A stretch of DNA of 64,000 nt, from assembly GCF_039654945.1 (NCBI RefSeq), contig NW_027361682.1, positions 27,714,001 through 27,778,000 of the forward strand, in the 5' to 3' direction. Position 1 is the first letter of the stretch, and each line of letters begins with the position of its first letter. Positions 22,120 through 62,932 of this stretch are shown here, piece after piece. The stretch is from Dendrobates tinctorius (taxonomy: Eukaryota). The notes under the pieces are model-generated. The model was given only the letters and a program-made list of their open reading frames with translations. It was not told where the DNA came from and did not search any database. The translations under genes were made by a program, and so were the position numbers.

Positions 22120-26831
<4,712 letters not shown>

Positions 26832-39507: not shown

Positions 39508-39677
39508 GCCGGGGTCACACTTGCGAGAAACTCGCACAAGTCTCGCCTCTTAATACCAAGCACTCAGACCGGAGCGCTCAGCTGCGTAGAAATAAATGCA
39601 GCCACACACTCCGGTCCCGAGTGCCGGGTATTGAGACGCGAGACTTGTGGGAGTTTCTCACAAGTGTGACCCCGGCC
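39508..39677. mobile_element. Short palindromic MITE (related partial copy at about 19878-20030)
   Basis: GGCCGGGGTCACACTTG / CAAGTGTGACCCCGGCC with TAA flanks. Confidence 0.75.
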
Positions 39678-39796
39678 TAATAGTGACCCACAGACTCTCA
39701 CTTTAAACAGATCCCCGGCCCAGGCCCCTCTTTATTTTGACCATCAGGCCTGCCCCCTTCTTTCACAAGCCGCCAAACCAGACAGACAGATAATAA

Positions 39797-40823: not shown

Positions 40824-41868
40824 ATGAAAGATCCATCATCTCCAATGGATGTTTGCCCGTTTTGCGGGAAGGCTTTTAAGAGACTGAAATCCCATTTACC
40901 CCATTGTAAGATGGCTGAAAACAAAAACAAAGCTACAAGGCCAGACCCTGGAGACCAAAGTAGGACTGCCAAACAGGTGCCCATGAAAAGGACAGGCACA
41001 AGTTTGCCAAGCTTAGATAAACAGGACATGAAAGCAAAAGCGAAAAGTAAGACAGGACTTAAAATTCAAGTTCAACAAGACAAAACCATATCCTCACCCC
41101 AGACGACAGCAACAAAAGTGGGAAAAGTCACATCAGGAAATATGTTGACCCAGCAGAAAGCTGTATCAACCATCGATGAGTCCAAGAAACCTCTACAGAC
41201 AGCCATAAGGACAAGTCAAATGATTACCTTACCAAAAGATCAAGATCGACAGCTGGTGGCATTAGCAGAACCTATTATGCCAATCCAGCAGGCCGTTATA
41301 TTAAAGACCAATCTTGAGAGATCAGTACCAATTACTGTGGAAAGTCCAAGATCGGGCAACATGGAAACTGTGAGAGACCAAGTCAGTATTAAAAAGTTTG
41401 AAGGAGATTTGATACGATTATTTGTGCCCAATCGCATCTCAGAAAAAGACATCGTAGAGCGTTCAGATGGGGTATGGCCTCACAGACCGGTCTATTTGGA
41501 TCAAAATTTTGTTTCAAAGTTTCATTCAGGATCTTCCAAGGCTTTGATGGTCTTCGAGTGGCCTACTAACTTTCCTCAGGAAGGGGTTAAAACACAAATG
41601 CCAGGAATTGCCTCAGTTGGGTGCAATATAAAAGCTGAAATGCATGATATTAAAGCATTGGGGACTACCGGGAAGTCTATGGAGAACATGATGGACGTGT
41701 TATTCCCACCCAAGACTATGCAGATAGTCGATGGTCACTTAGGGATGCACTGGATTCCGCAGTTGTATCCCAATTATGTCCAACTGTGCATAGTTCCTGG
41801 AAGACAAGATCAATGGGATCCACTTGGTAGAGGAACAACGATGCCAGACCCAATTGGAAATCTACCTG
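40824..41868 (+). CDS. C17orf80: C17orf80 large coding exon
   Basis: Acceptor TTCAG|TG ATG; CPFC...H..C motif; HLGMHWIPQLYPNY motif near the end; donor CCTG|GTAGAG. Confidence 0.88.
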
Positions 41869-43231
41869 GTAGAGTACCACCATGGTTAGATTGCTTGGAT
41901 CCTACAAGGATCCCTCATTCCTTTTATGCTTTTTAGGTCATTTTTCTTCTCTCTATCCCTAGAAGAAGTTTCTAAGATTGCTCGAACAGAGTCCATTCTA
42001 GAAAACCAGTCTATATCCAAGCGCCTGATGGATGTCAGACTCGGGGAGCTTCCTCACTGGTTGGCCAACCATAGCTTTACACCAAAGAATCTTACAACTT
42101 TTATGGCAAATGGTGAGAGAGCAAGTTACTTTTTGTCCTGTGGAGGTGCTGCAGGAAAATTCAACACTTTTGGTCAGGTTCTTTCACGCATCAGTGGAAA
42201 GGTTTGGGTAACCCTTACTACAAAAAGGGATTGTCTAAAGTGGAGAACCTTTTTAAGTCAATGGTGGCACACCAGTCTTCCAAAAGCTGGAAGCCAAGGG
42301 GAATTTCCAAATTATTTAACATTGCTACCTAAGGGTTCTCTACCATCACCAAATCCATTTTGAATAATCTGTAATGTCTGAAAGCTTCCTTTGAAAGAGG
42401 ATATTTCACACAATAATCATTATGGTATATCATTAGGATAGGTCACAACTAGAGATGAACGAATAAATTAGAGTGGAATAGAATGGTACAAAGATCTTCA
42501 TTTCGCCAAATTCGATTGGGAGCATTCAGCAACATTTTGAAGTGTATGGGACCATCAAAAGATTCTGAAATGTTAATTTAGCCTGATCTGCTCATCTCTA
42601 TTCATAACATTCAGGTCAGTGGAGGTGTTGTAAAACCAGCGATTGAGGCTGTAGTTCTTTGAGTGAATTGTCAAGGAATTGAAAAATATAGCTGCTTTCT
42701 TCCAGAAACAGCGCCACTTCTGTCCACAGGTTTGGGAGTGATATGACACGTTATCCCAACTAGTCATCCATGGATACGTGTGCTGCCGTTTTTGAAAGAA
42801 AGCAACATTTTTCTAGTAGTATACGACCTCCATTAACCCCTTAGTGACAGAGCCAAGTTTGTACTTAATGACTAACCAATTTTTACAATTCTGACCACTG
42901 TGAGGTTATAGCTCTGGAACACTTCAACGGATCACACTTATTCTGAGAGTGTTTCTTTGTGACATTGTACTTCATGTTAGTTGTCAAATTTCTTTGATAT
43001 GACTTGCGTTTATTTATGAAAAAAACAAAAATTTGGCAAACATTTAGAAAATTTAGCAATTTTCAAACTTTTAATTTTTGTGCCCTTAAATCAGAGAGCC
43101 ATATCGCATAAAATTGTTAATAAATAACATTTCTTTACATCAACACACTTTTGGAAACATTATTTTTTTTTTGTTAGGACATTATAAGGGTTGACCAGCA
43201 ATTTCTCATTTTTCCAACAAAATTTACAAAA

Positions 43232-43265
<34 letters not shown>

Positions 43266-46200
43266 GGGACCACCTCACTTTTGGAGTTTGGGGGGGTCAG
43301 TATGACAGAAAATACCCAAAAGTGACACCATTCTAAAAACTGTACTCCTCAAGGTGGTCAAAACCACATTCAAGAAGGTTACTAACCCTTCAGGCGCTTC
43401 ACGAGAACTAAAGAAATATGGAAGGAAAAGAACATTTTACTTTTTTCACAAAAAATTTTTTCGACCCAAATGTTAATTTTCACAAGGGTAACAGAGAAAA
43501 TGGACCACAAAATTTATTATGCAATTTCTCCTGAGTACTCCGATAACCCGTATGTGGGGAAAAGCCACTGTTTGGGGGCATGGCATGGCTCAGAAGGTGG
43601 GAGCACCGTTTGACTTTGACTGCAAAATTGGCTGGAATCAGTGGCAGTCACCATGTCGCGTTTGGAGACCCCTGATGTACCTAAACAGTGGAACCCCCCC
43701 AATTCTAACTCCAACCCTAACACAGCCCTACCTCTGACCCTAATCATAACTATAATCACAATGCTAACCCCAACACCCCATCCGTATCCCCAACCCTAAT
43801 GGCAAAATGGAAAAAAAAAATTTTATTTTATTATCTTTACCTAACTAAGGGGGTGATAAAGGGGTTTTGAGTGTTTTTTTTTTTATTTTGATCACTGTGA
43901 TCAAAATGAACCAATAGGAAAAATCTATTGTTGCCGGATGTCAGCCAGCAGATCTCAGCAGGAGGAAGACGCCAGAGGGTCCAGGGATACCGGGGGGGGG
44001 GGCTCAGGGGACCCCACTTCGCGCTCCTCTGGTATGCTACATCATATTAGAGAACAGACAAATAAAAGTGAAATTGGACTTTTTTTTGGGCATCGCCAGT
44101 ATTCCGTGAATGAGTGTGATCACGAGACTGGGGACGGTAAAACCGACCCGAATCATGTTCTCCGGGGTCTCAGCTACCCCTGGTAGTCGAGATCCCAGAG
44201 ATTTTCTGACACTGGGGGCCCTATAACCTTATTTCTCAGCGCCGTTAAAAAGCAGCGCTGAGGAATAAGTACCCTTAACTACCGCCGTTAAAAGGCGTAT
44301 CGGCAGTTGTAAAGGGGTTAAGAGCAGTTCATTCATTCTCAGAGGTAGCCATGGTAGTTTGATCTGATTAGGTAGATGTGTCTTATCCTTGTGATAGACT
44401 AGAACTTTAACCCCTTAGTGACGGGGCCAATTTTTTAAATTCTGACCATTGTCAGTTTATATGGTGATAACTCTGGAACGCTTCAACAAATCCCATTGAT
44501 TTTGAGATTTTTTCGTGGCACATTATAATAATAATAAATTTAATAAAAAACAAATCTGAACTGAGAAAAGTAAGTTAATGTGTATGCACAATGTAAGCGC
44601 ATATTAACACATGACCATTAACCAGAGAAAACAAAAAGCAAAAAACACAAATCCTGAACTAAAAAGTAAAAAATGTATACTGCAAATAATGCATAAAGGT
44701 AATAATAAGGGTATTTAGTAAACAAAATTTTGATCAAAATAATGTACAAGCCATCCCGCCACGTCACGGCAACCCTTGTGGGACAGTCCCTACTCTAGTA
44801 TTTAAAACCTTTTCACTTGCCAAGTGGCATGAATGTGAACAAGGGTCGAGCGGCTGAACCACTAGTAACAGTTTAGGCCAGACTGGATGGCTTTCCCAGC
44901 TCAGAAAGAGGGAGGTCACACCCATATATGCACTGAATGCACAATGAAATGAATAAAAAACAAATCTGAACTGAGAAAAGTAAGTTAATGTGTATGCACA
45001 ATGTAAGTGCATATTAACACATGACCATTAACCAGAGAAAACAAAAAGCAAAAAACACAAATATCCTGAACTAAAAGTAAAAAATGTATACTGCAAATAA
45101 TGCATAAAGGTAATAATAATAATAAGGGTATACATAATTATGTTTACTAAATACCCTTATTATTATTACCTTTATGCATTATTTGCAGTATACATTTTTT
45201 ACTTTTTAGTTCAGGATATTTGTGTTTTTTGCTATTTGTTTTCTCTGGTTAATGGTCATGTGTTATTATGCACTTACATTGTGCATACACATTAACTTAC
45301 TTTTCTCAGTTCAGATTTGTTTTTTATTCATTTCATTGTGCATTCAGTGCATATATGGGTGTGACCGCCCTCTTTCTGAGCTGGGAAAGCCATCCAGTCT
45401 GGCCTAAACTGTTACTAGTGGTTCAGCCACTCGACCCTTGTTCACATTCACGCCACTTGGCAAGTGAAAAGGTTTTAAATACTAGAGTAGGGACTGTCCC
45501 ACAAGGGTTGCCGTGACGTGGCGGGATGGCTTGTACATTATTTTGATCAAAATTATGTTTACTAAATACCCTTATTATTATTACCTTTATGCATTATTTG
45601 CAGTATACATTTTTTACTTTTTAGTTCAGGATATTTGTGTTTTTTGTTTTCTCTAATAATAAATTTAGGTTGATCTGTTTTGTTTATTTATAAAAAATAT
45701 CAGAAATTTGACACACGTAAAAAAATTGCAATTTTCAAACTCTGAATGATTATCCCTTTAATCCAGATAGTCATACCACACAAAACATTAATCAATAACA
45801 TTTCCCACATGTCGGCTTTACATCAGCACCATTTTTAAAGCGCTACTTTATTTTGTTAGCCTTTTAAGAGGTTTAAAAATGTAGCAGTAGTTTTTCATTT
45901 TTTCAAGGAAATTTACAAAATTTATTTTTTGAAGGGACCTATCAATGTTTGAAGTGACTTTTGGGGTGCTATATATTGGGAAACCCCAAACATGATACCA
46001 CTTTAAAAACAGCACCCCCTGACACATTGAAAACTGCTGTCAGGTAGTTTATTAACCCTCAAGGTGATTTTCAGGAATTACTGCAAAGTGGTATAGCTGG
46101 AATGAAAAAGTGTTTGTTTACCACCTAAATGTCGCTAACTTCTGAACTGACCGCTTTAGCCGGGAGACTCCAAGGCCGCTATTTGGCCATGAAATGCTAT

Positions 46201-49200
46201 AGGCAAACATCTGGACTACACAATCATGATCTCACGTGTCAATTAGATTAAAGTGGAAGCCCCCACAATCTATTAACCATTTATTTGATGTAGTCACTTT
46301 TGACAGCAGCAACTAAGGGGTTAAATAGACATGGACAGTGTCAACACTGATCGTTTGTGATGCAGCAAGTTGTCAGCTATAGTGTACAGCAGACAGCTGC
46401 TGGATTATCACCTGTGTGGGAATGATATTCACTTATATCTGATTTCAGTTAAAAGACGTATTGGCTGTCATTAAGGGGTTAAACACATCCTGTCACTTGC
46501 TTCAAAAATTTAGTTAAATATCTTGTAAAAATCCCAAAAGCTCACCCGATACTGCAGCTCTTTTCCATTTTGTGATGCGTCACTCCGTTGAAGAGATATT
46601 CACACTTGTTTCTTCTGGAGTGCACTATGAGAAATCTCTGCTTTGCAGTACAACTGGGCGTTTCTGCAGTCTTCTCTTTGGGCATGTACTTTCACTGTTT
46701 CTTTCAGAAGTATCCAATCACGGCTCAGCATGGCCCGAGACTGCTAGGTCAGCTGTTGAGTTGTGACTGGCAGCATCTGGGAGGGAGGGGTGAAAGCAAA
46801 CACCCCCAGAAAAGACTGAAGAATCCCACAGTTGTACTGCAAAGCAGAGATTTCCCAGTGCGCTACATAAGCAACAAATGTGAATATCTCTGCGATGGGG
46901 CAACGCAGCACAAAACGGAAAACGGCATCAAAATCAGGGGAGTTCAGGGACTTTTACAAGAAATTTAATTGCATTTTTTGAGCAAGTGACAGGTGCTCTG
47001 TTAAGGGGTTGTTCAGAATGTTACCCAAGTGGTCCTTACTGTTCCTGAAGTGCTGATATCACCTCCATCGTTTGTGTGACCGCTGCAGTCAATCACTTTC
47101 GTCACTGGTCACATTAGCATATATGGTGGACGGGATGGTATTGCTGCGGGACTATCAGAACAGCATCTCTGAAAGGGCAAACTTTTAATTAGGCGGGTCA
47201 TTTTTTAAATTATTATTTTATATTCTGTTAACTAACCAGAGGACAATTTTGAAAAAAAAAAATCCCGGACTGCCCTTTATTGTAAGTTAAAGGAAATTTT
47301 TATTATGTTTCAGAGGATAAGGACAGTTTAGTTAACCCTTTTCTTTTTACATTTATCATTTATTTTACAACCACATGATTTTTTTCCAGCTTGGGAGTGC
47401 TACTACAACAAATACATCAATGTGAAGAAGGGCGGCGCAGGAGGGCTGACCATGCTTCTCGCGGGCTACTGCGTTCTCAGCTATTCCTGGAACTTCGACC
47501 ATATAAGTATGATTACCTCCATATAATCCTGAAGTTACCTTTTATGCCTGGCTTTGTGCCCTTTTTTTTACTACCCCATTTGCTACCGTTTTGTGTATAC
47601 AGCTCCTACATAGAACTATGCATCTCCAGGTCACACATCATTTCATCTGTTCCCTGAATGTTGGTAACGTACAGTCAGGAAACAGGGGATCATGTATGAA
47701 GGATCTGACTACAAAGGGTTTTGTTTGTAGTCTGTAACCATAGAAACACATCCATAACAGCTGTATACACAACACAGTGGAAAGGAACTGTCCATTTGGG
47801 GGTTATTTTTTTTTTTTACTTGAATTCATGTATCTTGGGCTGAAAATTATGCATGAAAGTGAAATAACCCTCTAGTGTTGTACTGTCTTTTGCTGGTTGC
47901 CGAATGAGTTAACTGAGAATCAGTCAGTGAGCTTGCTTTGATGGTTTCACAGAACAGTTTGTAACGCCTTTGTGCAGAGAAACTAAAGAGCCTGTAAAAG
48001 CCAAACGGTGCAAAATATTTAATGAAATTCAATTTAAAAAATTATTTTTAGTCCCAAATACATTTTTTTCTGGTTAAAAAAAGCCACAAAAACTGACAAT
48101 CCCTTCAACAATAATTACTACAAGGGTTGTCTAGGATTAGAAAAACCCAGCAGCCCTTTTCCAAAAGCCGTGGCCACCCTATCCATGGGTTTTTGTTTGG
48201 TATCGTAGCTCAGCCCCACTAAAGTGAATGGGACCGAGATGCAAAGCCGCCATCCCAACCTGTGGCTAGGGTGGTGCTGTTATTTGGAAAAGGTGGCCAC
48301 TTTAATAACTGCGATCACCAAAAAGTGCCAGCGCGTGCGTCTGGAGACAGCCACATGTTAGCGCCATATTACGCCTGACAGTAATAATGACGCCCATCCG
48401 GAGATATTCGGGTTTTGCTCACCTGAAGCAATAGAGGGATCAGCCCCATAGGACCATGTAAGGCAAAGCCTGGGGTGATCTGGATATTAACGTTCAGACA
48501 GGATATTTGCTTTAAAAGCCACATTACCATGGAGATCACTTAATGCCCAGCACGGGCCGCTCCGGTAAATCACCTTTCATTGCGGACCATTATACCGCAC
48601 CAGCTGGAAGGAAAACATTAACTCCACGCATAGCAATGTATTCCTGGAGCCCTAAAAAGGCAATACATCTCATCCAGCACGAAAGACGGAATTAACTGGA
48701 GACTGCAGAATAAATCAGAGCGTGAGCGCTCCTTCCAGATATTTATATTCCAGGCTGCGTTAGAAAGTTCGGGGGAAAATGCATTTTTTATTTTTTTTTT
48801 TTAATTTCTCAAACTCTGCAAAATTGCTACAGCTTTAGAGCGATTTTAGAATCCGTGATTTTGCAAGAATGTCAATTTAATATATTGTGCAGCAAGTAAA
48901 CTAGTTTTTTTCATCTGTCCTGTTGCTGCTCTTCCTCTAAGGAAAGTGTCAGACTGCCATGGGTGTGGATGAGGATCGCAACGCAATGCTCGGACAGGCT
49001 GGCAGCTGCATAGAAATACATGCTGTCTCGCTCTGGTCAGGAGAGCGGCCGGCCAGTCCGAGCATTGCGTTGCGTCCTCGTCCAAGTTACAAGACCTGTC
49101 CGGCTCTTCTCCAGTGCTTTGATATCTTGTTAATACTTAAATGATACTTTCCTGTGACACCGGTATTAGAAAAGTTGTGTTTTTAATCCATTTGACCCCG

Positions 49201-50337
49201 TTGTTTCCCCTTAAGGATAATCGTCACTTGTGGTATATGGCAGCTGCTTATCCCACATTAAAAGGGGTTTGTTTTTGTTTCATGAAATCTGTCTCCTGGC
49301 TGGAGTTTGTTAAAAAATCTGATTGAACTTTACTCACCCTCCCCGGGTCCAGCACTGAATGTCTGCAGTGCTGCCATCCCATCGATACTGCAGTCAATCA
49401 ATGAGCTCAGTGGCTTTGACTGCCATCTACTCCGGCACAGCCAGTGAGCTCAGTTACAGGCTGCAGCACTGTCAACAGGACGTCCGCACCGCAGACATTA
49501 ACATACACGGAGAGCAGCGGCGGAGATGAAGTTCTGGAACTGGGTAGGGCCTTTAAAGTAAAACTGCAGCTGGGACACAGGGATTTTCTGAAAGTGGAAA
49601 GACCCTTTAATTCGGAATAAGCAACTGTCAAATACCATAGGTGAGGCTTATCAACAGGGACAAATGGATTAAAATAACAACCGTACAAAAATAAAATAAA
49701 TTATAACTATATAAATATTAGATAATAGTAATAAAATATATACACAGTTAGGTCCATATATATTTGGACAGAGACAACATTTTTCTAATTTTGGTTCTAG
49801 ACATTACCACAATGAATTTTAAGCAAAACAATTCAGATGCAGTTGAAGTTCAGACTTTCAGCTTTCATTTGAGGGTATCCACATTAAAATTGGATGAAGG
49901 GTTTAGGAGTTTCAGCTCCTTAACATGTGCCACCCTGTTTTTAAAGGGACCAAAAGTAATTGGACAGATTAAATAATTGTAAATAAAATGTTCATTTCTA
50001 GTACTTGTTTGAAAACCCTTTGTTGACAATGACTGCCTGAAGTCTTGAACTCATGGACATCAACAGACCCTGTGTTTCCTCCTTTTTGAAGCTCTGTCAG
50101 GCCTTCACTGCGGTGGTTTTCAGTTGCTGTTTGTTTGTGGGCCTTTCTGTCCGAAGTTCTGCATAAACCTGGGTCCAGGTGCTGAAGGGGGCGCAATAGC
50201 CCTTCTGTTAAATAAGAGAGCACCAGTGTCATAAGTAGCACATGGTGGAGGGGTGCCCCTGTTAAGGACCTGGAGCGTCGGCTCATACGTCTCACTTCTT
50301 TCTTTCAGAGCAAGATCGTTGGAGGAAATATCACTGA
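40824..50337 (+). CDS. C17orf80: C17orf80 / mitochondrial nucleoid-associated protein 1 homolog, 446 aa
   Basis: join(40824-41868,41963-42112,47390-47506,50309-50337) = 1341 nt. N-term [23 protein letters not shown]; C-term ATP synthase f-like ...RLGELPHW...YYNKYINVKKGG...QDRWRKYH*. Synteny with FAM104A and CPSF4L. Confidence 0.92.
41963..42112 (+). CDS. C17orf80: C17orf80 coding exon 2
   Basis: SKRLMDVRLGELPHWL; phase 1-1. Confidence 0.88.
42837..44317. mobile_element. Non-autonomous piggyBac-like element
   Basis: TTAA|CCCCTTAGTGAC...AAGGGG|TTAA. Confidence 0.75.
44411..46478. mobile_element. Second related piggyBac-like element containing the 44542-45653 insertion
   Basis: TTAA|CCCCTTAGTGAC...GTCATTAAGGGG|TTAA; 5' part homologous to the 42837 copy. 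Confidence 0.75.
44542..45653. mobile_element. Non-coding retroposon-like insertion: 410-bp unit in partial tandem plus inverted copy (Penelope/retrozyme-like)
   Basis: Unit repeats at 44542 and 44952; inversion centre ACATAATTATGT at about 45137; TSD TAATAATAAATTT at 44529-44541 and 45654-45666. Confidence 0.65.
46485..47000. mobile_element. Palindromic MITE (Kolobok-like)
   Basis: CCTGTCACTTGCT...AGCAAGTGACAGG inverted arms. Confidence 0.6.
47390..47506 (+). CDS. C17orf80: C17orf80 coding exon 3
   Basis: WECYYNKYINVKKGGAGGLTMLLAGYCVLSYSWNFDHI (predicted TM helix); 117 nt. Confidence 0.92.
49745..50157 (-). mobile_element. Truncated Tc1 fragment (different family)
   Basis: CAGTTAGGTCCATA TIR; minus strand encodes a transposase C-terminus ...LMSMSSRLQAVIVNKGFSNKY*. 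Confidence 0.75.
50309..50337 (+). CDS. C17orf80: C17orf80 last coding exon
   Basis: (K)QDRWRKYH*; ATTAAA at 50552. Confidence 0.9.
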
Positions 50338-51300
50338 TGACCTCACAGCTTTCGGAATGCCGGTACTGCACATGGTGTCACCATCAGCATGCCTGATGTC
50401 ATGGGAGACAATCAGCAAGTGCCTTGTGAATATTTGCACTGAGGTTCTCTTACATTTCATTTTTTGCGTTGTGTTAACTTATTTTTAGTTGTGGCTGTTT
50501 ATTTATAGTATTGAGTTTATATAACTGAGAACCTGTACTGACCACGCCATTATTAAAAGTGTGTACTGACTGAAACTACTGGATTCCCTATATCGAACAA
50601 TTGAGGATGACATTGTCATGAACCCATGACGGCTGGAAACCATAAACAAGTTGTAAGAGGCAGTCTCGTGAAGACCACCCCTGTCAGTCTGCACTCAGGG
50701 AGAATGCAGGACGGCGGGTGGAGAGCTGGACTACGGAGGAAGAGAGCGGGACGGCAGTTAAGTTACTATGCCCAGGGGGAAATTATAGTTTATGGCTCTT
50801 GGAAGAAAACACTTACATGCCAAGTCGCAAGCACGGCTGGCACGTGTGGTGCACCAGTCATAGTCACTAGGTACACGATACACCCTTAAGAGTGGGTTGT
50901 CCAGGATTACACAAATATGACTGATTTCTTTCAGAATCCGCATCCCTCTTACCTATGGGTTGTGTTTGGTAGATCAGATCGGCACCATTCACTTCAATGG
51001 GGCTGCGATGCAATACCAGACTCAACCCATAGTCAGGGGTGGCGCTGTTCAGAAAGAGAGCAGACATTTTTCTAATCCTGGAGTCGACTCTTCCCACCTA
51101 AGCCCAGCTAATATTGCCTGGAAATTAATCAGATACTAAAGATTACCAAAATATAATTTATTTTATTCTATAACTTAGGGGATGTCTCATGGGATAAATC
51201 ATCAGTTATGGTGCTCAAATTCCAACATGTCCATGCAAGACTGGATGAGGGAATGGTGGTCTTATCTGTGTCGTGCGGCCATTTCTCCACCGTCGGCCGT

Positions 51301-51369
51301 TCACTTCCTCAGTAGCAGGGCATAACGGTTCTTGCTGCACTTGTTGGCATAGTGGCCTCGCTCTCCACA
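51301..51369 (-). CDS. CPSF4L: CPSF4L last exon (zinc knuckle second half)
   Basis: [11 protein letters not shown]...*; minus-strand AATAAA at about 51157-51167. Confidence 0.88.
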   Translation of the reverse strand, partial: CGERGHYANKCSKNRYALLLRK

Positions 51370-54300
51370 CTGCATGGTCCAAAGCAAAAAGGGAATTAGA
51401 AACCTAGAAGAATGTGCTGCTGAACAGGGCAGGTACTTTATCCTTACTTTGAAACACGTGACTTGTTCCAGGGGTCTCAGACCCCCACAGACATTTTCCT
51501 GCATCTTTCTAAAGCGCTCGTGCATCATGGTTAAGACAGTCAGGTGTGAGAGATGCGGCAGCTCCAGAATGAGGGCTGGGGGCTTCAACGTGGGCTCAGG
51601 ATCACAGGGGAGTGAAGGGACCTGGACCCTCTGAGGTGCAGCAGCATTCTGTAAGACGAACCAGGGTCAACAAACCAAAGCCTGAAGGCACTAAAGTGAA
51701 GTATGCCCCATTTTATACTTCTTGTAGAGAGTTGGGCAAATTTTTACATGCAGTCAGTTACTTATTCTGTACTGATCGTGTTATATCCTGTATTATACTC
51801 CAGAACTGCACTCACTATTCTGCTGGTGCAGTCACTGTCTACATACATTACATTACTTATCCTGTACTGATCCGGAGTTACATCCTGTATTATACTCCAG
51901 AACTGCACTCATTATTCTGCTGGTGCAGTCACCGTGTACATACATTACATTACTGATCCTGTACTGATCCGGAGTTACATCCTCTATTATACTCCAGAGC
52001 TGCACTCACTATTCTGCTGGTGCAGTCACTGTCTACATACATTACATTACTTATCCTGTACTGATCCCGAGTTACATCCTGTATTATACTCCAGAACTGC
52101 AGTCACTATTCTGCTGGTGCAGTCACTGTCTACATACATTACATTATTTATCCTGTACTGATCCTGAGTTATATCCTGTATTATACTCCAGAGCTGCACT
52201 CACTAGTCTGCTGGTGCAGTCACTGTGTACATACATTACTTATCCTGTAATGATCTGGAGTTACATCCTGTATTATACTTCAGAGCTGCACTCACTATTC
52301 AGATGGTGCAGTCACTGTGTACATACATTACTGATCCTGAATTGCATCCTGTATTACACTCCAGAGCTGCACTCACTATTCTGCTGGTGGAGTCACTGTG
52401 TACATACATTACATTACTTATCCTGTACTGATCCTGAGTTACATCCTGTATTATGTTGAATCTATTTTTATTGAAAGATCAAGTAGACAAAGAAAACATA
52501 CAAAATTATGAAAGTTATACACCCATCTGAGCAATATTACAGTATAAACAATCATTTATAAATCCGGTACGACTGCTAAAATGAAGTCTCGTAGCTTCCC
52601 AGTGGGACGTATATTGAGCAGACACAAACACACCGCCACTGAGCAGGTAACCGGGTGGTTGTCGCTAAATCGGTTAACCTAGCCATATAGGCTACATCAA
52701 ACATTTTGCTTATATAAAATGGAACAGACTGGAGAGTAAATTTTCCTCCTATTATCTGAGTTCTTAGCAACATAGATGGGTAGGTATCTTAAAACAATAG
52801 TCATAATCATTCATAGTGCATTTCACATGTATCAGCAGGGTGTATTATAGAGAAAGAAAGGATAATATGAAAGAGAAAGGGGAAAGAACACAAGAAAAAT
52901 TAGAATGGAACATTTAAGAGTAATAGGGGAGGGGGAGGGAGACGGGCACCAAACTCCCGAACCGGCCCCTAAGAAGCCTCCTCAACCAGTTGAGACAACC
53001 CAGTGGTTTCTTTAAATAAGATCCAGGGATGCCAGATGCGAATCAAGCGGGTGTTGTCCCACTCCATCTCAGCCATCAGCTCCTCCATCCGGAAGATATC
53101 TGCAAATTCCGACACCCATTCCGCCATTGTTGGCGGTATTGCTACTCGCCAAAGGCGTGGGATTACCATACGTGCTGCAGTGACACAAAACCTGAGAAGA
53201 CTCCGTTTCTGGGCCGATATGGAGCCCGGAAGGATCGAGAGGATGGCAACTTGCGGGGAAGGGAGAACAACATCTCCAGTAATTTGATAAGCCGAGAACA
53301 CCTTCTTCCAAAAGGGTTGTATAGCGGAGCACTGCCACCATATGTGGTATAGTGTGGCTCTCTCGGTTCCACACCGCCAACAAGTGTCCGCCACCAACGG
53401 AAAAATAGACTACAATCTAACGGGGGACAAATACCATCTGGTTAGTATCTTAAAATTTTTCTCCTGTGCGCCCCCGGCCTGGGACATTTTGTGTGTGAAT
53501 AGGTAAGCTTTGTTAAGATCCTCTACCGAGAATCTACAGCCCATCTCCTCCTTCCATGCCCGAATGTAACTCGGAATCTCCTCCGAGTCCCCAATATGAA
53601 ACTCCTTATATAGGAGAGAAATCAGATGAGGAGGGTCCTGTTGCTGCAATAAATTTTCCATTCATGGGGGGAGTTGCGGCCCGCCATATGTCTCTGGACA
53701 AACGACCTCATCTGATTATATTCCATCCAGGAGAGCCCCCTATTGGGAGATTGTTCTTGTAGAGTCTCCAAAGATGGAATATCTCCTTCCACCAGTACCT
53801 GTCCCAAGCGTAAGTCAGAGCTAATGTGTCAGCCTAAAAAACGATCCCTGAGGCGACCCGGAGGAAAGTCCGGGTTGCCAAAAATTGGTGTCAACGGATT
53901 CAGGACACTAATCAATTTCTTCTTAATTTTTATACGTTTCCAGAGTCGTAATGTCTCTTGTGCCAAAAAGCCCGTGGATCCCTCAGAGCCGCCTGTAGTA
54001 TGATCATAGCATCGGATCCAAGGAAGGTGTCGCAAGGGAATGTCAAAGGATGTCTGTTCCAATTGAACCCATTGTTTAGAGCAGTGGCCATACTGCCAGT
54101 CGAGTAGGCGCGCTAGTGTGGAGGCCTTATGGTAAAGTTCTAAGTCAGGGAGGCCCGCGCCCCCTCTGGATTTCGGAGTGGTCAGACTGGTATATTTTAA
54201 ACGGGGCCTAGGAGCCTGCCAAACAAATCGGACCAATGCGGATCTGATGGTCTGGAAGAATGCCCTCGGCGGTGTAATCGGGACCGCCTGAAACAAATAC

Positions 54301-57300
54301 AAAAACCTGGGAAGAACATCCAACTTAAAGGAGTTCATCCTACCAAACCATGAAATATTCTTTCGTCCGTACTCTCTCAAACGCTTCAGGGTCGATTCCA
54401 GAAGGGGTAAATAGTTGAGTTTGTAAAGGTCGGTCATGTCGGCAGGAATTTGAACGCCCAAATATTGGATAGCTCCATTTTGCCACCGAAAGGGGAAATT
54501 CTCCATTATTCTCGTAAGTTCTTCTGGTCCTAAGGATATATTAAGGGCTTTGGTTTTCTGAAAATTAATTTTAAAATTACTGACTGCACCGTATTTTTTA
54601 AATTCCACCATCAGCGACGGAAGGGAAATGTGTGGCTGAGATACATACAGTAGGAGGTCATCCGCGTAAAGAGAGACCTTATAATGAACTCTATCCACCC
54701 ATAGGCCGTGCACACTGGGATTCCCCCTAATTGCTACCGCCAAATGTTCCATGACCACAGTGTATAAAGTATAAAAGGGGCGATAGAGGGCATCCCTGTT
54801 GTGTGCCGTTCCCGATAGCTATAGGGTCTGACAATGCTCCATCGACCCTAACTCTCGCCGAAGGGCTGGAGTACAGAGCCACAATCTTTTGTAGGAAGCG
54901 ACTCCCCAGGCCTATTTGCCGCGGGGCCGAGAACATGAATCCCCAGTGTACCCGGTCAAAGGCTTTCTCCGCGTCGATCGACAGCAGCGCCATCGGTTTA
55001 TGTTTTGATTTAGCATGTGCAGTCAGAATGAGGGTTTTATTTATCCCGTCCCTCGCCTCCCTCCCCCGTACAAACCCCACCTGATCCGAGTGCACAACCA
55101 AAGGCAGAAGGGGAGCTAATCGGTTAGCCAAAATTTTTGCGCAAAGTTTCACATCTACATTAATAAGTGATATTGGGCGATAATTAGTTACTATCGTAGG
55201 ATCCCTTCCCGGTTTCAGCATCACTGTAATGAAAGCCTCTAAAGGCCCTTTTACATTTAGCGATGCACCAGCGATCCGACCAGCGATCCCACCCGGTCAG
55301 GATCGCTGGTGCATCGCTAAATGATCGCTAGTGAGCTTTCATACAGAAAGACCTCACAGCGATGCAGCAGCGACGCAGCGCACGATACTTACCTTTCACA
55401 CCCAGCGATGAAGACGTCCTCCCGCCCGCCTCCACGCGTCGCTGGACGTCACAGCAGGAAGTCTCAGCAGGAAGCGCCCGACGAGAAATGGAGCCGGACA
55501 TTCTCGCGCGATCAGCGATGGACAGCGGGGGAGCCGGTCGCTGGTAAGTATCACACATAGCGATATCGCTAGCAATATCGCTATAACGTCACAAAACCAG
55601 TGACGTTTTAGCGATATTGCTAGCGATATCGCTTAGTGTAAAACCCCCTTAAGGATTGTGGGACAAATGGGGCATCGGCTGCGATGGAGTTAAAGACCTG
55701 TGTCATAGTGGGGTTAAGTTGCTCTCAAAATGTCTTGTAGAAATGAGGGGAAAAGCCCTCCGGTCCTGGGCTCTTACCAGCTGGAGTGTTCCGAATGACC
55801 TCATCAATCTCCTCCGTTGTGAAATCAGTTTCTAGTGGTTCTGTTAGATCTGTAGTCAATGTCGGGAGGGCGGTATCATGTATGTACGACTCAATTTGTG
55901 GTTGGGGGTCCAGAGACGGCTGAGAGGGGTCACCTCCTTTAATATTGTACAATGCATGGTAATAGCGCTGCATTATGTCTAGGATTTCGGTTGGGTTCGA
56001 CGTCACCTGACCACGATGCTTCTGAAGGGACGGTATGTATGTGGTCCGACAACGTGGATGTAAAAATCTAGATGGCATACTCCACATTTATTAGCTTGGC
56101 CATATAAAAGACTTTTAAAGCGATTTCTATGAATACGGGACTTCTCATTTAACAGAGATTTCAGGTCGTCCCTACATTTGATCAAGCCAGTCTGCGTCTC
56201 CGCTCTTAAGTCATTCTTATGGTTCGTCTCCAGAATTAATACTTTTTCCTTAAGATCCCAAATTTCCTTGTTTTTCAATTGCTTCAAGCGGGAACCATGT
56301 TTAATAAGCACCCTTCTAAAGACACATTTAAGAGTTTCCCATTTGATAGGCATAGCGGCGTCATCATGTGCGTGATCTTGTAAAAATGTCACTATGGTAG
56401 TTTTAACGTCAGCCATACATGTGGGGTCTTTTAAAAGATTATCGTTCAGTCTCCACATCCACTGTCGCGTTCCCGAATCAGGGGGGCTGATGTCCAAAAA
56501 GATTGGAGCATGATCCGACCACAGGAAACTTCCAATAGACGGTTTCGGATTCCAAGCCAACGCGCAGTGGCTAAGAAGAAAAATCTATTCTGCCATATGA
56601 GTTATGTGACGTGGAGAAGAACGTGTAATCCTTCGTGGTGGGGTTAAGGAGCCTCCCGACATCGGTGAGTTGTAAGTCGTGAAGGTCTCTTTTTAAAGAG
56701 GTCATCTGTTGAAGAGAGAGCTAAGACCTTGCCGCCGTCGAGTCCAATGTCGGGTTAAGAGTCAGATTGAAGTCTCCCCCCAGTATAACAACCTCTTCAG
56801 CAAAATCAGCTACAATCTTCAAAAAGGACCGAACAGCTCGAATTTGATCTCGGCCGGAAGCGTACCAACCAGCTATAGTATATGTTGTTGAAAAAATCTG
56901 GATCTTCAAGATCATGTACCTCCCTTCCGTATCAATTAGTGTGTCCAGTATAGTATGTTGGAGGGATTTGTGGAGTGAAATGGAAACACCTCGGGATCGT
57001 GAGTCCGGGTTGGCGCTGTGGAACCAAGACGTGTAATAGCGATTGGGTATATTAGGAACATGTCCAATCTTAAAATGTGTCTCTTGTAATATCAATACAT
57101 TAACTTTTTTCTTGTGCATACCATATAAGATATGCGACCGTTTCTGTGGTGTGTTGAAGCCCCTCACATTTAAGGAGCCCAATGTGATCCTCTGTGTGGC
57201 AGTCCTACCAGGCATCGTGTTTGCAGACTGGGATCGAGGGACTCAAGCTTCCTCCACAAGGATGGGTCCGCTCCGGGGTCCAGCGCCCGCTGTAGGGAAG

Positions 57301-60300
57301 GGGGAAGGTTAATGGGGTGGGGATAGGTTAGATACAGAGAATAAACAAAGAGTTAAGAATTAGAAAAGCAGAAGATAACAATACAGTCATGGCCAAAAGT
57401 ATTGACACCCCTGCAATTCTGTCAGATAATACTCAGTTTCTTCCTGAAAATGATTGCAAACACAAATTCTTTGGTATTATTATCTTCATTTAATTTGTCT
57501 TAAATGAAAAAACACTAAAAGAATTGTCCTAAAGCCAAATTGGATATAATTCCACACCAAACATAACAAAGAGGGTGGACAAAAGTATTGGCACTGTTTG
57601 AAAAATCATGTGATGCTTCTCTAATTTGTGTAATTAACAGCACCTGTAACTTACCTGTGGCACCTAACAGGTGTTGGCAATAACTAAATCACACTTGCAG
57701 CCAGTTGACATGGATTAAAGTTGACTCAACCTCTGTCCTGTGTCCTTGTGTGTACCACATTGAGCATGGAGAAAAGAAAGAAGACCAAAGAACTGTCTGA
57801 GGACTTGAGAAACCAAATTGTGAGGAAGCATGAGCAATCTCAAGGCTACAAGTCCATCTCCAAAGACCTGAATGTTCCTGTGTCTACCGTGCGCAGCGTC
57901 ATCAAGAAGTTTAAAGCCCATGGCACTGTGGCTAACCTCCCTAGATGTGGCCGGAAAAGAAAAATTGACAAGAGATTTCAACGCAAGATTGTGCGGATGT
58001 TGGATAAAGAACCTCCACTAACATCCAAACAAGTTCAAGCTGCCCTGCAGTCCGAGGGTACAACGGTGTCAATCCGTACTATCCGTCGGCGTCTGAATGA
58101 AAAGGGACTGTATGGTAGGAGACCCAGGAAGACTCCACTTCTTACCCCGAGACATAAAAAAGCGAGGCTGGAGTTTGCCAAAACTTACCTGAAAAAGCGT
58201 AAAACATTTTGGAAGAATGTTCTCTGGTCAGATGAGACAAAAGTAGAGCTTTTAGGGCAAAAGCATCAACATAGAATTTACAGGAGAAAAAAGAGGCATT
58301 CAAAGAAAAAAACACGGTCCCTACAGTCAAACATGGTGGAGGTTCCCTGATGTTTTGAGGTTGCTTTGCTGCCTCTGGCACTGGACTGCTTGACCGTGTG
58401 CATGGCATTATGAAGTCAGAAGACTACCAACAAATTTTGCAGCATAATTTAGGGCCCAGTGTGAGAAAGCTGGGTCTACCTCAGAGGTCATGGGTCTTCC
58501 AGCAGGACAATAACCCAAAACACACTTCAAAAAGCACTAGAAAATGGTTTGAGAGAAAGCACTGGAGACTTCTAAGGTGGCCAGCAATGAGTCCAGACCT
58601 GAATCCCATAGAACACCTGTGGAGAGATCTAAAAATGGCAGTTTGGAGAAGGCACCCTTCAAATATCAGGGACCTGGAGTAGTTTGCCAAAGAAGAATGG
58701 TCTAAAATTCCAGCAGAGCATTGTAAGAAACTCATTGATGGTTACCAGAAGCGGTTGGTCGCAGTTATTTTGGCTAAAGGTTGTGCAACCAAGTATTAGG
58801 CTGAGGGTGCCAATACTTTTGTCCGGCCCATTTTTGGAGTTTTGTGTGAAATGATCAATGTTTTGCTTTTTGCTTCATTCTCTTTTGTGTTTTTTCATTT
58901 AAGACGAATTAAATGAAGATAATAATACCAAAGAATTTGTGTTTGCAATCATTTTCAGGAAGAAACTGAATATTATCTGACAGAATTGCAGGGGTGTCAA
59001 TACTTTTGGCCATGACTGTATAATTAACAAAGCGGGTGTGATTAAGCACACACCCACAGACAACGTGAAACCAGGTGGAGGTATGCACTAATTGCTGTAC
59101 GCCTCAATGGCAGGACAGCACCTCCAAGGGGGGTAAGTGTACGGCAAGAAGAGAAATGGAGACCCGTCTCCCCCGGTCCCCAACCTTATAATGAAATAAA
59201 CTTCACTTGCCCCTGAAACAAGAAATCCAACCCCTTAAGATTATATATACCATTTCTAACAAACCCATGAGTCGTTGGCGTATCACGTTTCATGTTCAGC
59301 TTCAGTATCGTTAAAACCGAAAATGTTAAAGACGTCACAGCCATTAAATCTAGAACACCATAAACTTTCTAGAATCATGACTTCCATTAAACGGAGCCCC
59401 ATAAGGTGGCAAATCATCTAGGTATCTGGAAATATTCAGCATGAAGACACAGCCATCCAAGAGTGAGCGGGGGGGGGGAGAGAGGGGAAAGTGGAAAGAA
59501 GTGGAAAGGAAAAGAAATTTGACCGATCACATAATCTGATTTAACCCTCCGTTCCTCATTGCTAATAAAGCTGATCCCTCATCTCCACCCCCCATCCACC
59601 CATGCAGAAAATCTCTCCTAAATCACAAAACTCTGCCATCAGTCATTTTCTCCTTCTCCCGGATGTGCCCGCCCACGTCTATTGGGCCGCCGCTGTCGTT
59701 GAGGAAGCTGTCCTCCACGAGGGTCGTCCATTCTGTAAAAGGACGGTAGGGGTGGCCAGTCGAGGACGTCCACCTCATGTAGATCCAGGGCAGCTGAAAA
59801 TGCTGGGATTCCGCTGGGGTGACTCAGGTGATGTACTCTGCCCCTCTTCTGAACCCGGAGGCAGAACGGAAACCCCCAGGTATAGGGAAGATCTTTTTGT
59901 CGCAGTTCCTCCAAGAGTGGGCGAAGGGCTCTACGTCTCTGCAAAGTCCATCTGGATAGATCTGGTAGGAGCTGTATGCGGGTATCCAAGTGCTTAATGG
60001 GTCCTGCTCCCCTGGCCGCTCCCATGACTGCGTCTTTAAGTTGGTACTTATGGACCCGACAGATCACATCTCTCGGTGGGTCTTGATTATTAGGACGCGG
60101 GCCCAGAGCCCTATGAGCACGATCTAACTCCAGTGGGGTATCTTGGGGTCTATCCAATACCGAATTGAAGATGCCTCTCAAGGTGGTGTTTAACTCCTGA
60201 GGAGGGATAGCTTCGGGTAATCCCTGTACTCTTATATTATTCCTGCGTCCCCTATTTTCAGAATCGTCCAGCATCTCTGCCAGAGTCTGCAGCTGTCTAG

Positions 60301-62932
60301 CCTGGGCAGCCACAGCAGCTTCTTGAGCCTCTATTCTGTCATTCAGGGAAGTCAGGAGCTGGTCATGAGATTCAACCTTCTCTCCGCATTGTTGAATATC
60401 ATCCTTAAGTATAGAAAGTTCCGCTTTGTAAGAAGATTCCAAGCGAACAATATATTGTTCCATATCTTGTTTCGTCGGTATGTCTTTTATCTTATTATAC
60501 AGTAATGTGAAATCAACTCCTATGGGTACTACAGGTTCTCCTGCCAGGAGAGGGGCCACAGGCCCGCATTGTGATGTTATGGACGTGACTAATTGAGGAG
60601 TAGGTGGGGGAGGTATGCCAGACGGCAAGTCATCTTGATGAGCATTTATTATTATGGGTTGATTAAGCTGCCCTCTCAGCTTGGGGTCGGCTCCGTCCTG
60701 AGTTATATTGTCTCCTGTGATGGCAAGGTTGCTGTCAGGAGGCTTAGTATTAAGCCCCCGTTAAACACTGCGATATCGCTAGCAATATCGCTGTAAAGTC
60801 ACCGATTTTGTGACGTTGCAGCGATATTGCTAGCGATATCGCTGCATGTGATACTTACCTCCGACCGGCTCCCCCGCTGGTTATCGCTGATCGCGCGAGA
60901 AGCTGTTGGACCATTCCTCGTCGTCAGCTTCCTGCGGCGCTTCCTACTGTGACGATGAGCGACGCGTGGAGCCGGGCAGGAGGACGCAGGATCGCCGCGT
61001 CTGACAGGTAAGAAGCGATCCCCGTCCCCAGCGATGTCGCTGGTGAGATCTGCCTGTGTGGCAGCTCACTAGCGACCACCTAGCGATGCACCAGCGATCC
61101 TGACCGCGTCATATTGCTGGTTGGGATCGCTGGTGAGTCGCTAAGTGTAACGGTACCCTTAGTATTATTTCCCTGGGAGAGTGGCGCAGGGTATGTCAGG
61201 GTGGCCCTCCCTGGGCCTGCATTGGGTACAGCAGTGTGAGGTCTCTTCGGCCTGTCTGCGGGGTCTCCCTTTAAGGCATATGTTTCCAGGGGCTCAGCGG
61301 TGCTATTACCGCTATTAGCAGACTGCCTCGCTTCTTTCACCTCCATCAAAGTCGCCCCACTAGATCCTGGGGAGGTCCCCTCTCTCTGTCTTCTCTCCCT
61401 CCACGCTGTTCCCCCATCTTCGGTACCTTTCTCCCTGCCGACGGCAGGGCCGATTGTCCTCTGCGCTCCGCTTCCAACATGGCGCCTGCACCTGCAGCCT
61501 TCTTCCCCGCTCCCGCGATGTAGCGGGAAATGTTGTGGGGAGCTTTCTCGGGTGCCGCGGAGCCTGAAGGCGCACTCCCCCGGCTTCTCCTTGTGGACAT
61601 TGGGGTGTTGGACATCAGGGTAAGTCCCTTGTTGTGGTGGTTCCCGGTGCTGAAGCGGGAGCTCTCCAGGACGCGTCCTAACTCCTCGCCGGCCATGCCA
61701 CGCCCCTACATCCTGTATTATACTCCAGAGCTGAACTCACTTTTCTGCTGGTGCAGTCACTGTGTACATACATTACTTATCCTGTACTGATCCTGAGTTA
61801 CATCCTGTATTATACTCCAGAGCTGCACTCACTATTCTGCTGGTACAGTCATTGTGTACACGCATTGCATTACTTATCCTGTACTGATCCTGAGTTACAT
61901 CCTGTATTATACTCCAGAGCTGCACTCACTATTCTGCTGGTGCAGTCACTGTGTATATATATTACATTACTGATCCTGAGTTACATTCTGTATTATACTC
62001 CAGAGATGCACTCACTATTCTGCTGGTAGAGTCACTGTGTACATACATTACTTATCCTGTACTGATCCTGAGTTACATTCTGTATTATACTCCAGAGCTG
62101 CACTCACTATTCTGCTGGTGAAGTCACTGTGTACATACATTACATTACTTATCCTGTACTGATCCTGAGTTACATTCTGTATTAGGCTATGTGCACACTC
62201 TGCGGTTTTGGCCGCTGCGGATCTGCAGCAGTTCTGCAGACAGTGTGCAGAACAATGTAAGTTTATGTGATTTACAATCTGCTGTGCACATGCTGCGGAT
62301 TTTTAACTGTGGAAAAGTTGCGGTTTTGAATCCGCAGAAAGAAAATGACATGTCAATTCTTTTCTGCGGATACTGCTGCGGTTTACCATCTCCTCCACTG
62401 TAGAGGTGATAAACCGCAGGCCAATCCGCAGGTCATTTTACCTGCGATTCCGCAGATACAAATCCGCAGACCAATCCGCAGCATGTGCACATAGCCTTAT
62501 ACTCCAGAGCTGCACTCACTATTCTGCTGCTAGTGGAATCCCTGCCTACTGAATACATTACTTTTCCTAAATGACATCCTGTATTGTACTCCTGAGCTAC
62601 AATCTTAATTCAGTTAGCATTACAAATTACTAACCTTTATATGGTCTGGACTGTAGATTATCAAGTCAACTTTTGGACTGGAAAACATATAAACATAACA
62701 GATGATTGTTATTTGGGACCCCGATGAGGGGGGAGGGGACCACATACACAAGTAAAACACTGGGCCTGTAGCGCTCCCTTATTGACCTGTAGACAGGTAG
62801 CGGTTTCCACTGGAGTGCGTGGGAAGCCGACAACTTACTGGACGTATTTACAGCTTGGACCTTCTGGGCAGAAACCCACCAGGTAGTTGGTGCACATGAC
62901 TCTGCGGGTGTGTCTGTGCTTACAGGCTGGAC
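51301..62932 (-). CDS. CPSF4L: CPSF4-like (CPSF30 paralog), 3' four exons; 5' exons outside the window
   Basis: complement(join(51301-51369,51448-51648,62635-62677,62839-62932)): [32 protein letters not shown]|[14 protein letters not shown]|NAAAPQ...[10 protein letters not shown]|[26 protein letters not shown] finger plus CCHC knuckle; position next to C17orf80 is that of CPSF4L. Confidence 0.85.
51448..51648 (-). CDS. CPSF4L: CPSF4L penultimate exon
   Basis: Ends [10 protein letters not shown]|GTAAGG; acceptor TCTTACAG. Confidence 0.85.
51750..52454. repeat. ~97-bp satellite array, left part
   Basis: Same unit as 14856-16882; continues at 61707-62530 after the L1. Confidence 0.92.
52969..57215 (-). 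pseudogene. L1 ORF2 (endonuclease-RT), frameshifted and MITE-interrupted
   Basis: Seven partial ORFs with collinear EN, RT and C-terminal cysteine motifs. Confidence 0.9.
55243..55649. mobile_element. PIF/Harbinger-like MITE in L1 ORF2
   Basis: TAA TSD; removal restores ...PQSL|[11 protein letters not shown]. Confidence 0.8.
57384..59018 (+). mobile_element. Tc1 transposon copy 2 (same family as 33292-34928), in the L1 inter-ORF spacer
   Basis: TA|CAGTCATGGCC...GGCCATGACTG|TA. Transposase 57766-58799 has a frameshift near 58290 and stops near 58356 and 58680. Confidence 0.95.
59639..60628 (-). pseudogene. L1 ORF1 core (coiled coil, RRM, CTD)
   Basis: ORF track protein with L1 ORF1 motifs; N-terminal part continues with frameshifts and a MITE up to about 61600-61696. 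Confidence 0.85.
60753..61159. mobile_element. MITE in L1 ORF1 (relative of the 55243-55649 MITE, opposite orientation)
   Basis: Shared CGATATCGCTAGCAATATCGCT and CAGCGATCC repeats. Confidence 0.75.
61707..62530. repeat. ~97-bp satellite array, right part, with MITE 62185-62496
   Basis: Same unit; MITE GGCTATGTGCAC...GTGCACATAGCC with TTA TSD. Confidence 0.9.
62635..62677 (-). CDS. CPSF4L: CPSF4L small internal exon
   Basis: TTTTCCAG|T CCA AAA...ATA AAG|GTTAGT; phase 2 to 0 fits both neighbours. Confidence 0.7.
62839..62932 (-). CDS. CPSF4L: CPSF4L CCCH zinc-finger exon
   Basis: [29 protein letters not shown], close to CPSF4 ZF4 end and ZF5. Confidence 0.93.

Follow-up and report, generated by a model that had tools for sequence, protein, structure and literature searches.

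The convergent MTNAP1 and CPSF4L genes of Dendrobates tinctorius as a probable ancient copy of the ATP5MF-CPSF4 gene pair

MTNAP1 (C17orf80) is a recently characterised protein of the mitochondrial nucleoid, and its gene now counts among human disease genes through its link to a neurodegenerative disorder (PMC13035927). The protein binds double-stranded DNA in a non-sequence-specific manner and promotes the replication of mitochondrial DNA (mtDNA) (Wu et al. 2023, PMC10484793). Structurally, its N-terminus forms a C-x2-C-x9-H-x3-C finger and its C-terminus is homologous to ATP5MF, the subunit f of ATP synthase, along nearly the full length of that subunit (HHpred E 2.6e-15). The combination of finger and f domain is limited to gnathostomes, and complexome and BioID data found human C17orf80 without association to complex V (Potter et al. 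2023, PMC10445727). The subunit-f homology is therefore already published and also stands in Pfam annotation, and the gene is annotated by NCBI. This work addresses MTNAP1 of the frog Dendrobates tinctorius together with its downstream neighbour CPSF4L, a paralog of the polyadenylation factor gene CPSF4 (CPSF30), which in mouse is testis-enriched and dispensable for fertility (PMC13253961). Both genes lie in a stretch of 64,000 nucleotides (nt) of contig NW_027361682.1 (positions 27,714,001 to 27,778,000, forward strand), which is called the window below and whose own numbering is used.

The tail of MTNAP1 is very probably a duplicate of ATP5MF, and CPSF4L a duplicate of CPSF4, the copying of both genes as one convergent block predating the last common ancestor of jawed vertebrates. 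The duplication of a two-gene block at the DNA level before the crown gnathostomes is well supported; the mechanism of duplication, its lower age bound and the function of the protein in the frog are what we infer. Nothing in the searched literature links MTNAP1/C17orf80, ATP5MF, CPSF4 and CPSF4L with one another, and no paper there names three or more of these genes in a relevant context. Potter et al. (PMC10445727) make no mention of duplication, synteny, introns or CPSF4L, and the paper on MTNAP1 disease (PMC13035927) draws no link to ATP5MF or CPSF4L. Since the linked-pair and exon-structure argument is absent from this literature, the identity of the exons and the co-duplicated CPSF4 partner represent a modest addition to a known story. 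The copying of a two-gene block is an evolutionary detail on a known gene, not a new kind of system. It would nonetheless provide this nucleoid protein with a concrete origin, as a neofunctionalised ATP5MF duplicate.

The subunit f exons of MTNAP1 and a mirrored pair on a second contig

D. tinctorius MTNAP1 lies on the plus strand of the window (40824-50337). Its sequence agrees to 100% with the protein that NCBI annotates as "mitochondrial nucleoid-associated protein 1 isoform X2" (P0001, 445 amino acids (aa)), and so does the 370-aa open frame at 40824-41936. Exact spliced mapping of this protein to the window gives coding exons of 1045/147/117/29 nt with all three introns in phase 1, in agreement with the coordinates read directly from the sequence (Table 1). 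The initial annotation of this DNA had described the last three exons as 150, 117 and 29 nt, each entered in phase 1, which the mapping bears out, and the peptides it quoted were located in the window where it had placed them. The two lengths of the first of these exons go back to a tandem NAGNAG acceptor (tAGaAG; ...ctagaag|AAG...) at 41961-41966. The upstream AG (41961-41962) yields the 150-nt exon and the downstream acceptor the 147-nt exon, and the resulting isoforms differ by one Glu.

The homology of the tail to subunit f was recovered with several tools. Residues 367-440 of the frog protein match Pfam PF10206 (WRW, subunit f) with 36.1 bits (cutoff 26.5, E 8.8e-9), the single f exons scoring under the cutoff when taken alone. 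A phmmer search with the last 94 residues against solved ATP synthase subunit f chains reached E 1.3e-22 over 80 of 93 residues, aligning query 15-94 to chain 14-93 of 93 (8h9f_R) with the C-terminal transmembrane helix included. Further matches were obtained to seven more mammalian chains and one 119-aa chain (E 7e-9). Against the frog's own ATP5MF, the tail is 56% identical (47/84) without a gap. The proposal that the tail aligns with nearly the whole of ATP5MF is thus sustained, and on these alignments the likeness to subunit f is far beyond chance. As in the definition of Potter et al., the frog protein combines an N-terminal CCHC finger and a C-terminal PF10206 domain in one chain (precomputed PF28519 and PF10206 matches). 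The transmembrane helix is encoded at about 47434-47490, inside the 117-nt exon.

When the two larger f exons were used as queries against the frog genome, exactly one other locus was returned, on contig C149. This locus carries an intact ATP5MF of 89 aa, 92% identical to that of Phyllobates, with exons at 3365071-86, 3366657-764, 3374399-515 and 3381509-37 (16/108/117/29 nt, phase 1). It is the true ATP5MF ortholog. ATP5MF stands alone as a subunit of about 90 aa whose first coding exon measures 16 nt, whereas the f domain of MTNAP1 is the tail of a 445-aa protein. A search with the CPSF4L exons likewise returned one paralog, on the minus strand of C149 and downstream of ATP5MF. The layout there is convergent, with ATP5MF at 3365071-3381537 (plus) and CPSF4 at 3445326-3421315 (minus). 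In translated comparison, the frog CPSF4, with its five CCCH fingers and CCHC knuckle, shares seven collinear exon blocks (exons 1-5, penultimate and last) with the CPSF4L of the window, and the two are 74.6% identical over 193 columns. Ten of the longer open reading frames (ORFs) in the 40-kb gap between ATP5MF and CPSF4 were compared with Pfam; five gave no match, and all matches of the others were to transposons (Tc1/mariner, Pao, integrase). The extra PF10206 matches in the frog genome (L002, L003) were rejected as spurious, their translations holding no subunit-f sequence. For each of the two families, two real loci were found in this genome, one on C149 and one on the contig of the window (C14).

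The CPSF4L gene of the window runs on the minus strand, and 963 nt separate its stop codon from that of MTNAP1, which fits the tail-to-tail arrangement of C17orf80 with a CPSF4 paralog put forward by the initial annotation. The window ends within CPSF4L and holds just its 3' half; exons 1-4 follow 0.5-22 kb past base 64000, at about 64.5, 73.4, 77.5 and 86.0 kb in extended window coordinates. The intron between its penultimate and last exons is 78 nt long (CT..AC on the plus strand). Transcript evidence came from contigs of four public runs from two organisms, which the software classed as RNA only by a guess and which were aligned to 47300-51700. Contigs from the four runs contain the MTNAP1 joint 47506>50309 (GT..AG) and the CPSF4L joint 51369>51448. 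The MTNAP1 contigs stop at 50543-50570, to about where its 3' untranslated region (UTR) extends, with an ATTAAA/AATAAA polyadenylation signal at 50552. The longest CPSF4L contig stops at 51146, the approximate end of the CPSF4L 3' UTR, with a polyadenylation signal at 51157-51162. The two 3' ends are about 580 nt apart and do not overlap in the contigs. Because the contigs end near polyadenylation signals, the two genes are taken to be truly tail-to-tail.

Table 1. Features of the MTNAP1-CPSF4L locus in window coordinates
Feature	Position	Strand	Evidence
MTNAP1 large first coding exon, 1045 nt, exits in phase 1	40824..41868	+	spliced mapping of P0001; 100% identity
MTNAP1 zinc-finger motif C-x2-C-x9-H-x3-C (CPFCGKAFKRLKSHLPHC)	40854..40907	+	sequence; precomputed PF28519 MTNAP1_ZnF
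First subunit-f exon, 150 nt (147 nt from 41966), encodes KRLMDVRLGELPHW...	41963..42112	+	donor position and phase equal to ATP5MF exon 2
Second subunit-f exon, 117 nt, entered and left in phase 1, encodes YYNKYINVKKGG	47390..47506	+	72% identity to C149 ATP5MF exon, E 1e-11
Last MTNAP1 coding exon part, 29 nt, KQDRWRKYH and stop TGA 50335-50337	50309..50337	+	spliced mapping
CPSF4L last exon with zinc knuckle; coding 51369-51301, stop 51303-51301	51146..51369	-	sequence, contigs
CPSF4L penultimate exon, 203 nt	51448..51650	-	sequence; joint 51369>51448; contig pieces 51448-51650
CPSF4L exon 5, 94 nt, CCCH fingers 4/5, phase 1 in, phase 2 out	62839..62932	-	72% identity to C149 CPSF4 exon, E 2.8e-10
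FAM104/VCF1 exon, upstream head-to-head neighbour of MTNAP1	22129..22326	-	PF15434, 70.8 bits, C14:27736129-27736326

Exons, pairs and trees across jawed vertebrates

The structure of the two genes was compared across species by exact spliced mapping, with lengths given in coding nt. ATP5MF measures 16/108/117/29 in Xenopus tropicalis and sawfish (Pristis), 76/108/117/29 in gar and 16/111/117/29 in sevengill shark (Heptranchias). MTNAP1 measures 1567/108/117/29 in turtle, 10/1155/108/117/29 in sterlet and 1492/117/29 in white shark. All introns are in phase 1 in every ATP5MF and MTNAP1 gene mapped. A comparison of intron positions and phases had been suggested as a check, and they proved identical between ATP5MF (Xenopus, gar, sawfish, D. 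tinctorius) and MTNAP1 (turtle, sterlet). The MTNAP1 tail accordingly resembles ATP5MF in its last two intron positions and phases, in its exon lengths (108/117/29 in most vertebrates) and in having a convergent neighbour of the CPSF4 family. The matching lengths and phases argue that the last three exons of ATP5MF and MTNAP1 are the same exons. The structure also fits the earlier claim that one subunit-f copy gained a large exon, since such an exon stands in place of the 16-nt phase-1 first exon of ATP5MF.

Within this common plan, two departures were observed. The homologue of ATP5MF exon 2 (108 nt) in D. tinctorius MTNAP1, its first f exon, is longer by 39/42 nt at the 5' end, an extension that arose within the frog lineage. 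The elasmobranch MTNAP1 models (P0016, P0017, P0020, P0022) are without the 108-nt first f exon (KRLMDVKLGELPxW...) and keep the 117- and 29-nt exons. This exon is absent from the white shark locus (L034 11492-15527), and a search of the white shark MTNAP1 intron for a remnant of it found none. The chimaera Callorhinchus retains the full f domain.

The linkage of ATP5MF and CPSF4 extends outside mammals, as the paired-duplication proposal requires. Besides the convergent pair on C149, ATP5MF of Xenopus tropicalis is followed by a convergent CPSF4 3.4 kb on, and in gar a forward ATP5MF meets a reverse CPSF4 (269 aa), beyond which lies a forward PTCD1-like gene. On the MTNAP1 side, the turtle order is reverse FAM104, forward MTNAP1 and reverse CPSF4L (249 aa). 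Sterlet has reverse FAM104 and forward MTNAP1, then a convergent CPSF4L remnant of 155 aa (L040 15471-17708, minus) in which only a first exon of CPSF4 type and the exon of the CCHC knuckle survive, the CCCH finger exons being gone; this neighbour is a decayed or repurposed CPSF4L. In the cloudy catshark, a convergent zf-CCCH gene of 244 aa overlaps the 3' end of MTNAP1, and the knuckle of this neighbour, CREKGHYANKC, bears the CPSF4L-type HYANKC signature. The order FAM104(-), MTNAP1(+) is common to frog, white shark, turtle and sterlet. The full plan, with FAM104 head-to-head and CPSF4L tail-to-tail, is thus present in frog, turtle and sterlet, its downstream side in catshark and its upstream side in white shark.

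Phylogenetic trees of the two families agree with this picture. An unrooted subunit-f tree parts 23 ATP5MF and 18 MTNAP1 rows by one branch with support of 90/93, and both sides of it hold chimaera or sharks, coelacanth, ray-finned fishes and tetrapods. The CPSF4/CPSF4L tree, also unrooted, comprises five taxa whose sequences were assembled from exons at the loci. Its two CPSF4L sequences, those of D. tinctorius and turtle, are separated from the CPSF4 of frog, Xenopus and gar with support of 99/98. CPSF4 is near-invariant (branches of about 0.02), and CPSF4L, a copy of this CPSF30 polyadenylation factor, evolves about ten times faster (about 0.2). From the tree splits, the duplication of both genes predates the bony vertebrates. 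The presence of MTNAP1 in chondrichthyans and, for CPSF4L, the catshark neighbour point to a duplication before the crown gnathostomes. The ages of the two families are therefore not discordant, since the catshark has both MTNAP1 and a convergent neighbour of the CPSF4 family and both f clades hold cartilaginous and bony fishes. Among the matches listed, the outgroup search with the f domain (word-index and exhaustive profile searches) gave gnathostome ATP5MF and MTNAP1 only. Short or partial matches that were considered as possible cyclostome or invertebrate sequences proved to be vertebrate fragments or pseudogene-like models.

The same comparison accounts for a recurrent database error. Short models of 89-98 aa named "ATP synthase subunit f" or "uncharacterized" in gar (P0033), pheasant (P0034), Mola (P0159) and coelacanth (P0242) are C-terminal fragments of MTNAP1. 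They bear the signature GG[AF]GG..MLLAGYCVLSY and cluster with MTNAP1, and the origin of the tail explains why they were repeatedly mislabelled.

Block duplication and its rivals

Taken together, the shared introns, the mirrored convergent pairs and the tree splits support the original proposal that the two-gene unit was duplicated together. An ancestral convergent ATP5MF-CPSF4 block would have been copied as one unit. On the MTNAP1 side, a phase-1 exon of 1-1.5 kb would then have taken the place of the 16-nt first exon, likewise of phase 1. This large exon codes for the CCHC zinc finger and for a long stretch of poor conservation. MTNAP1 would in this way be older than the jawed-vertebrate ancestor. 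Its membrane anchor would be an intron-for-intron duplicate of an oxidative phosphorylation subunit gene, copied with the adjacent gene of a polyadenylation factor.

Several observations weigh against this reading. The subunit-f tree was built from 86 columns, and the branch that divides the two families is not among the "starred" ones. Neither tree has a root, and the older age bound depends on the statement by Potter et al. of absence outside gnathostomes (PMC10445727). The catshark neighbour was called CPSF4L solely from its knuckle exon and precomputed Pfam matches. No CPSF4L exon was found within 10 kb of white shark MTNAP1, the catshark knuckle exon being already 8.2 kb off, and no CPSF4 exon within 10 kb of sawfish or sevengill shark ATP5MF. 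MTNAP1 of Oryzias javanicus sits between a G-alpha gene and a GLTSCR1-domain gene, with no CPSF4L beside it. For MTNAP1 of Callorhinchus, coelacanth and whale shark, the search for a contig gave no match. Heptranchias ATP5MF (L041) is placed between a BAR-RhoGAP gene and a 135-aa galectin, a flank that we take to resemble human 22q13.1 (SH3BP1/LGALS1) or 16p12 (ARHGAP17). These neighbours suggest that a different paralogous block may hold the ATP5MF of sharks. A tblastx comparison of the ATP5MF flanks of sawfish (L037) and sevengill shark matched repeats of long interspersed nuclear elements (LINEs) only. In the frog, C14 carries Tweety (29.99-30.09 Mb) and Fascin (30.96-30.99 Mb) genes, and on C149 an IBB exon of importin-alpha type lies at a distance of 370 kb from ATP5MF. 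Searches for IBB, IMD, Pentraxin, Tweety and Fascin revealed no second family common to C14 and C149, the two contigs spanning 32 and 12 Mb of a 6.36-Gb genome.

As to how the block was copied, the early vertebrate genome duplications are only modestly more likely than not to have been the mechanism. Human 17q25, like the contig of the window, carries Tweety and Fascin genes, and KPNA7, near ATP5MF in human 7q22.1, is what we liken to the IBB gene of C149. Human 7q21.3-q22.1 and 17q23-q25 share SMURF1/2, KPNA7/2, NPTX2/1, BAIAP2L1/BAIAP2 and LMTK2/AATK. These paralog pairs would favour a large-scale duplication. Apart from the two pairs, genes with an IMD domain (BAIAP2 family) occur together with pentraxin genes on four frog contigs, at 85.1-85.5 Mb on C28, which also carries a Tweety gene, at 45.15-45.53 Mb on C129, at 0.9-1.8 Mb on C211 and at 3.2 and 11.1 Mb on C158. 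This co-occurrence resembles the four-fold paralogon that the vertebrate genome duplications would leave.

The closest rival concerns the mechanism only. In place of a genome duplication, both loci could go back to a small segmental copy of the two genes, made in a stem gnathostome and translocated afterwards. It is the less likely of the two mechanisms and should be held tentatively. The two genes are all that is demonstrably common to both loci; the flanks differ, with FAM104 by MTNAP1 and PTCD1 by CPSF4, and the lack of a second family shared by C14 and C149 points in the same direction. However, the two pairs lie on different contigs and not in tandem. The human paralog pairs of 7q21.3-q22.1 and 17q23-q25, and the KPNA7-like frog gene 370 kb from ATP5MF, would also speak against a segmental copy. 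The age of the duplication, before the crown gnathostomes and with absence outside them (PMC10445727), coincides with that of the vertebrate genome duplications.

A very unlikely alternative to block duplication itself is that a zinc-finger gene beside CPSF4L acquired the three f exons, whether through exon shuffling or through a retroposed ATP5MF, its likeness to the ATP5MF-CPSF4 layout being coincidental or only partly related. Shuffling is permitted by the exons involved, all of them phase 1-1 symmetric, and the large exon has no detectable relation to ATP5MF exon 1. Retroposition, however, is ruled out because two introns keep identical positions and phases. A chance landing in the right convergent orientation, beside the only paralog of the neighbour of ATP5MF, would be very improbable. 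Sequence and Pfam searches also did not find a stand-alone homolog of the zinc-finger exon; against the local Pfam library, this exon gave just weak, sub-threshold C2H2 and ROS/MucR-like matches.

That MTNAP1 is an annotation artefact, fusing a zinc-finger gene to a separate short subunit-f paralog, is scarcely credible: the short "subunit f" models of gar and pheasant, which could suggest such a paralog, are really MTNAP1 C-termini, annotations of frogs, turtle, sterlet, chimaera and coelacanth show the joined architecture, the full-length human protein has been detected experimentally (PMC10445727), and a 1635-nt contig carries the exon 47389-47506 at its positions 1267-1384, an offset equal to 1045 and 147 nt upstream plus a leader of about 74 nt, which argues against a fused gene model.

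The anchor of MTNAP1 and other sequence in the window

The architecture of the frog protein is that of human C17orf80/MTNAP1, with an N-terminal finger, a poorly conserved middle and an f-like tail with a transmembrane helix, and the gene has the same FAM104 neighbour. It differs from the human protein in being shorter (445 aa) and in its first f exon, which is 147/150 nt, not 108 nt, and has the NAGNAG acceptor. Judging from human work (PMC10445727, PMC10484793), the subunit-f-derived C-terminus would serve as a single-pass anchor in the inner membrane. The zinc finger and disordered part would then face the matrix, bind mtDNA and nucleoids and promote mtDNA replication.

The conservation of the f module in MTNAP1 exceeds the needs of a simple membrane anchor. 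The identity of 56% to ATP5MF persists after more than 450 million years and includes the matrix-side KRLMDVKLGELPxW helix. On this basis, we consider it conceivable, and on balance improbable, that MTNAP1 docks at the position of subunit f, or onto the partners of f, in a subpopulation of ATP synthase, tethering mtDNA nucleoids to the ATP synthase rows of cristae. The tail-to-tail pairing would in that event be a selected arrangement of 3' ends and not inertia. Nature has provided experiments on both genes of the copied pair, since sharks lost the first f exon and the CPSF4L of sterlet lost its CCCH fingers.

Repeats and transposon-derived frames were also noted within and around both genes. 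Just upstream of the last MTNAP1 exon, at 49650-50240, a repeat is covered by numerous RNA-like contigs that are divergent and very deep, their depths summing to as much as about 1300. The repeat presumably belongs to a transposon family with abundant transcription and forms no part of the gene. Intron 2 of MTNAP1 contains, at 44542-45653, two near-identical 82-aa open frames in inverted orientation (44764-45012 minus, 45268-45516 plus). In the large CPSF4L intron (52969-60628), a minus-strand LINE (52969-57215) has open frames for endonuclease and reverse transcriptase. It is followed by a Tc1-type transposase on the plus strand (57721-58682) and, on the minus strand, by a gag-like frame of 329 aa (59639-60628). 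A translatable tandem repeat flanks these transposon frames on both sides, at 51.6-52.5 kb and 61.5-62.0 kb. Between FAM104 and MTNAP1, strong GC-skew excursions of +0.61 (28001-30000) and -0.48 (38001-40000) were recorded, which are probably simple or strand-biased repeats.

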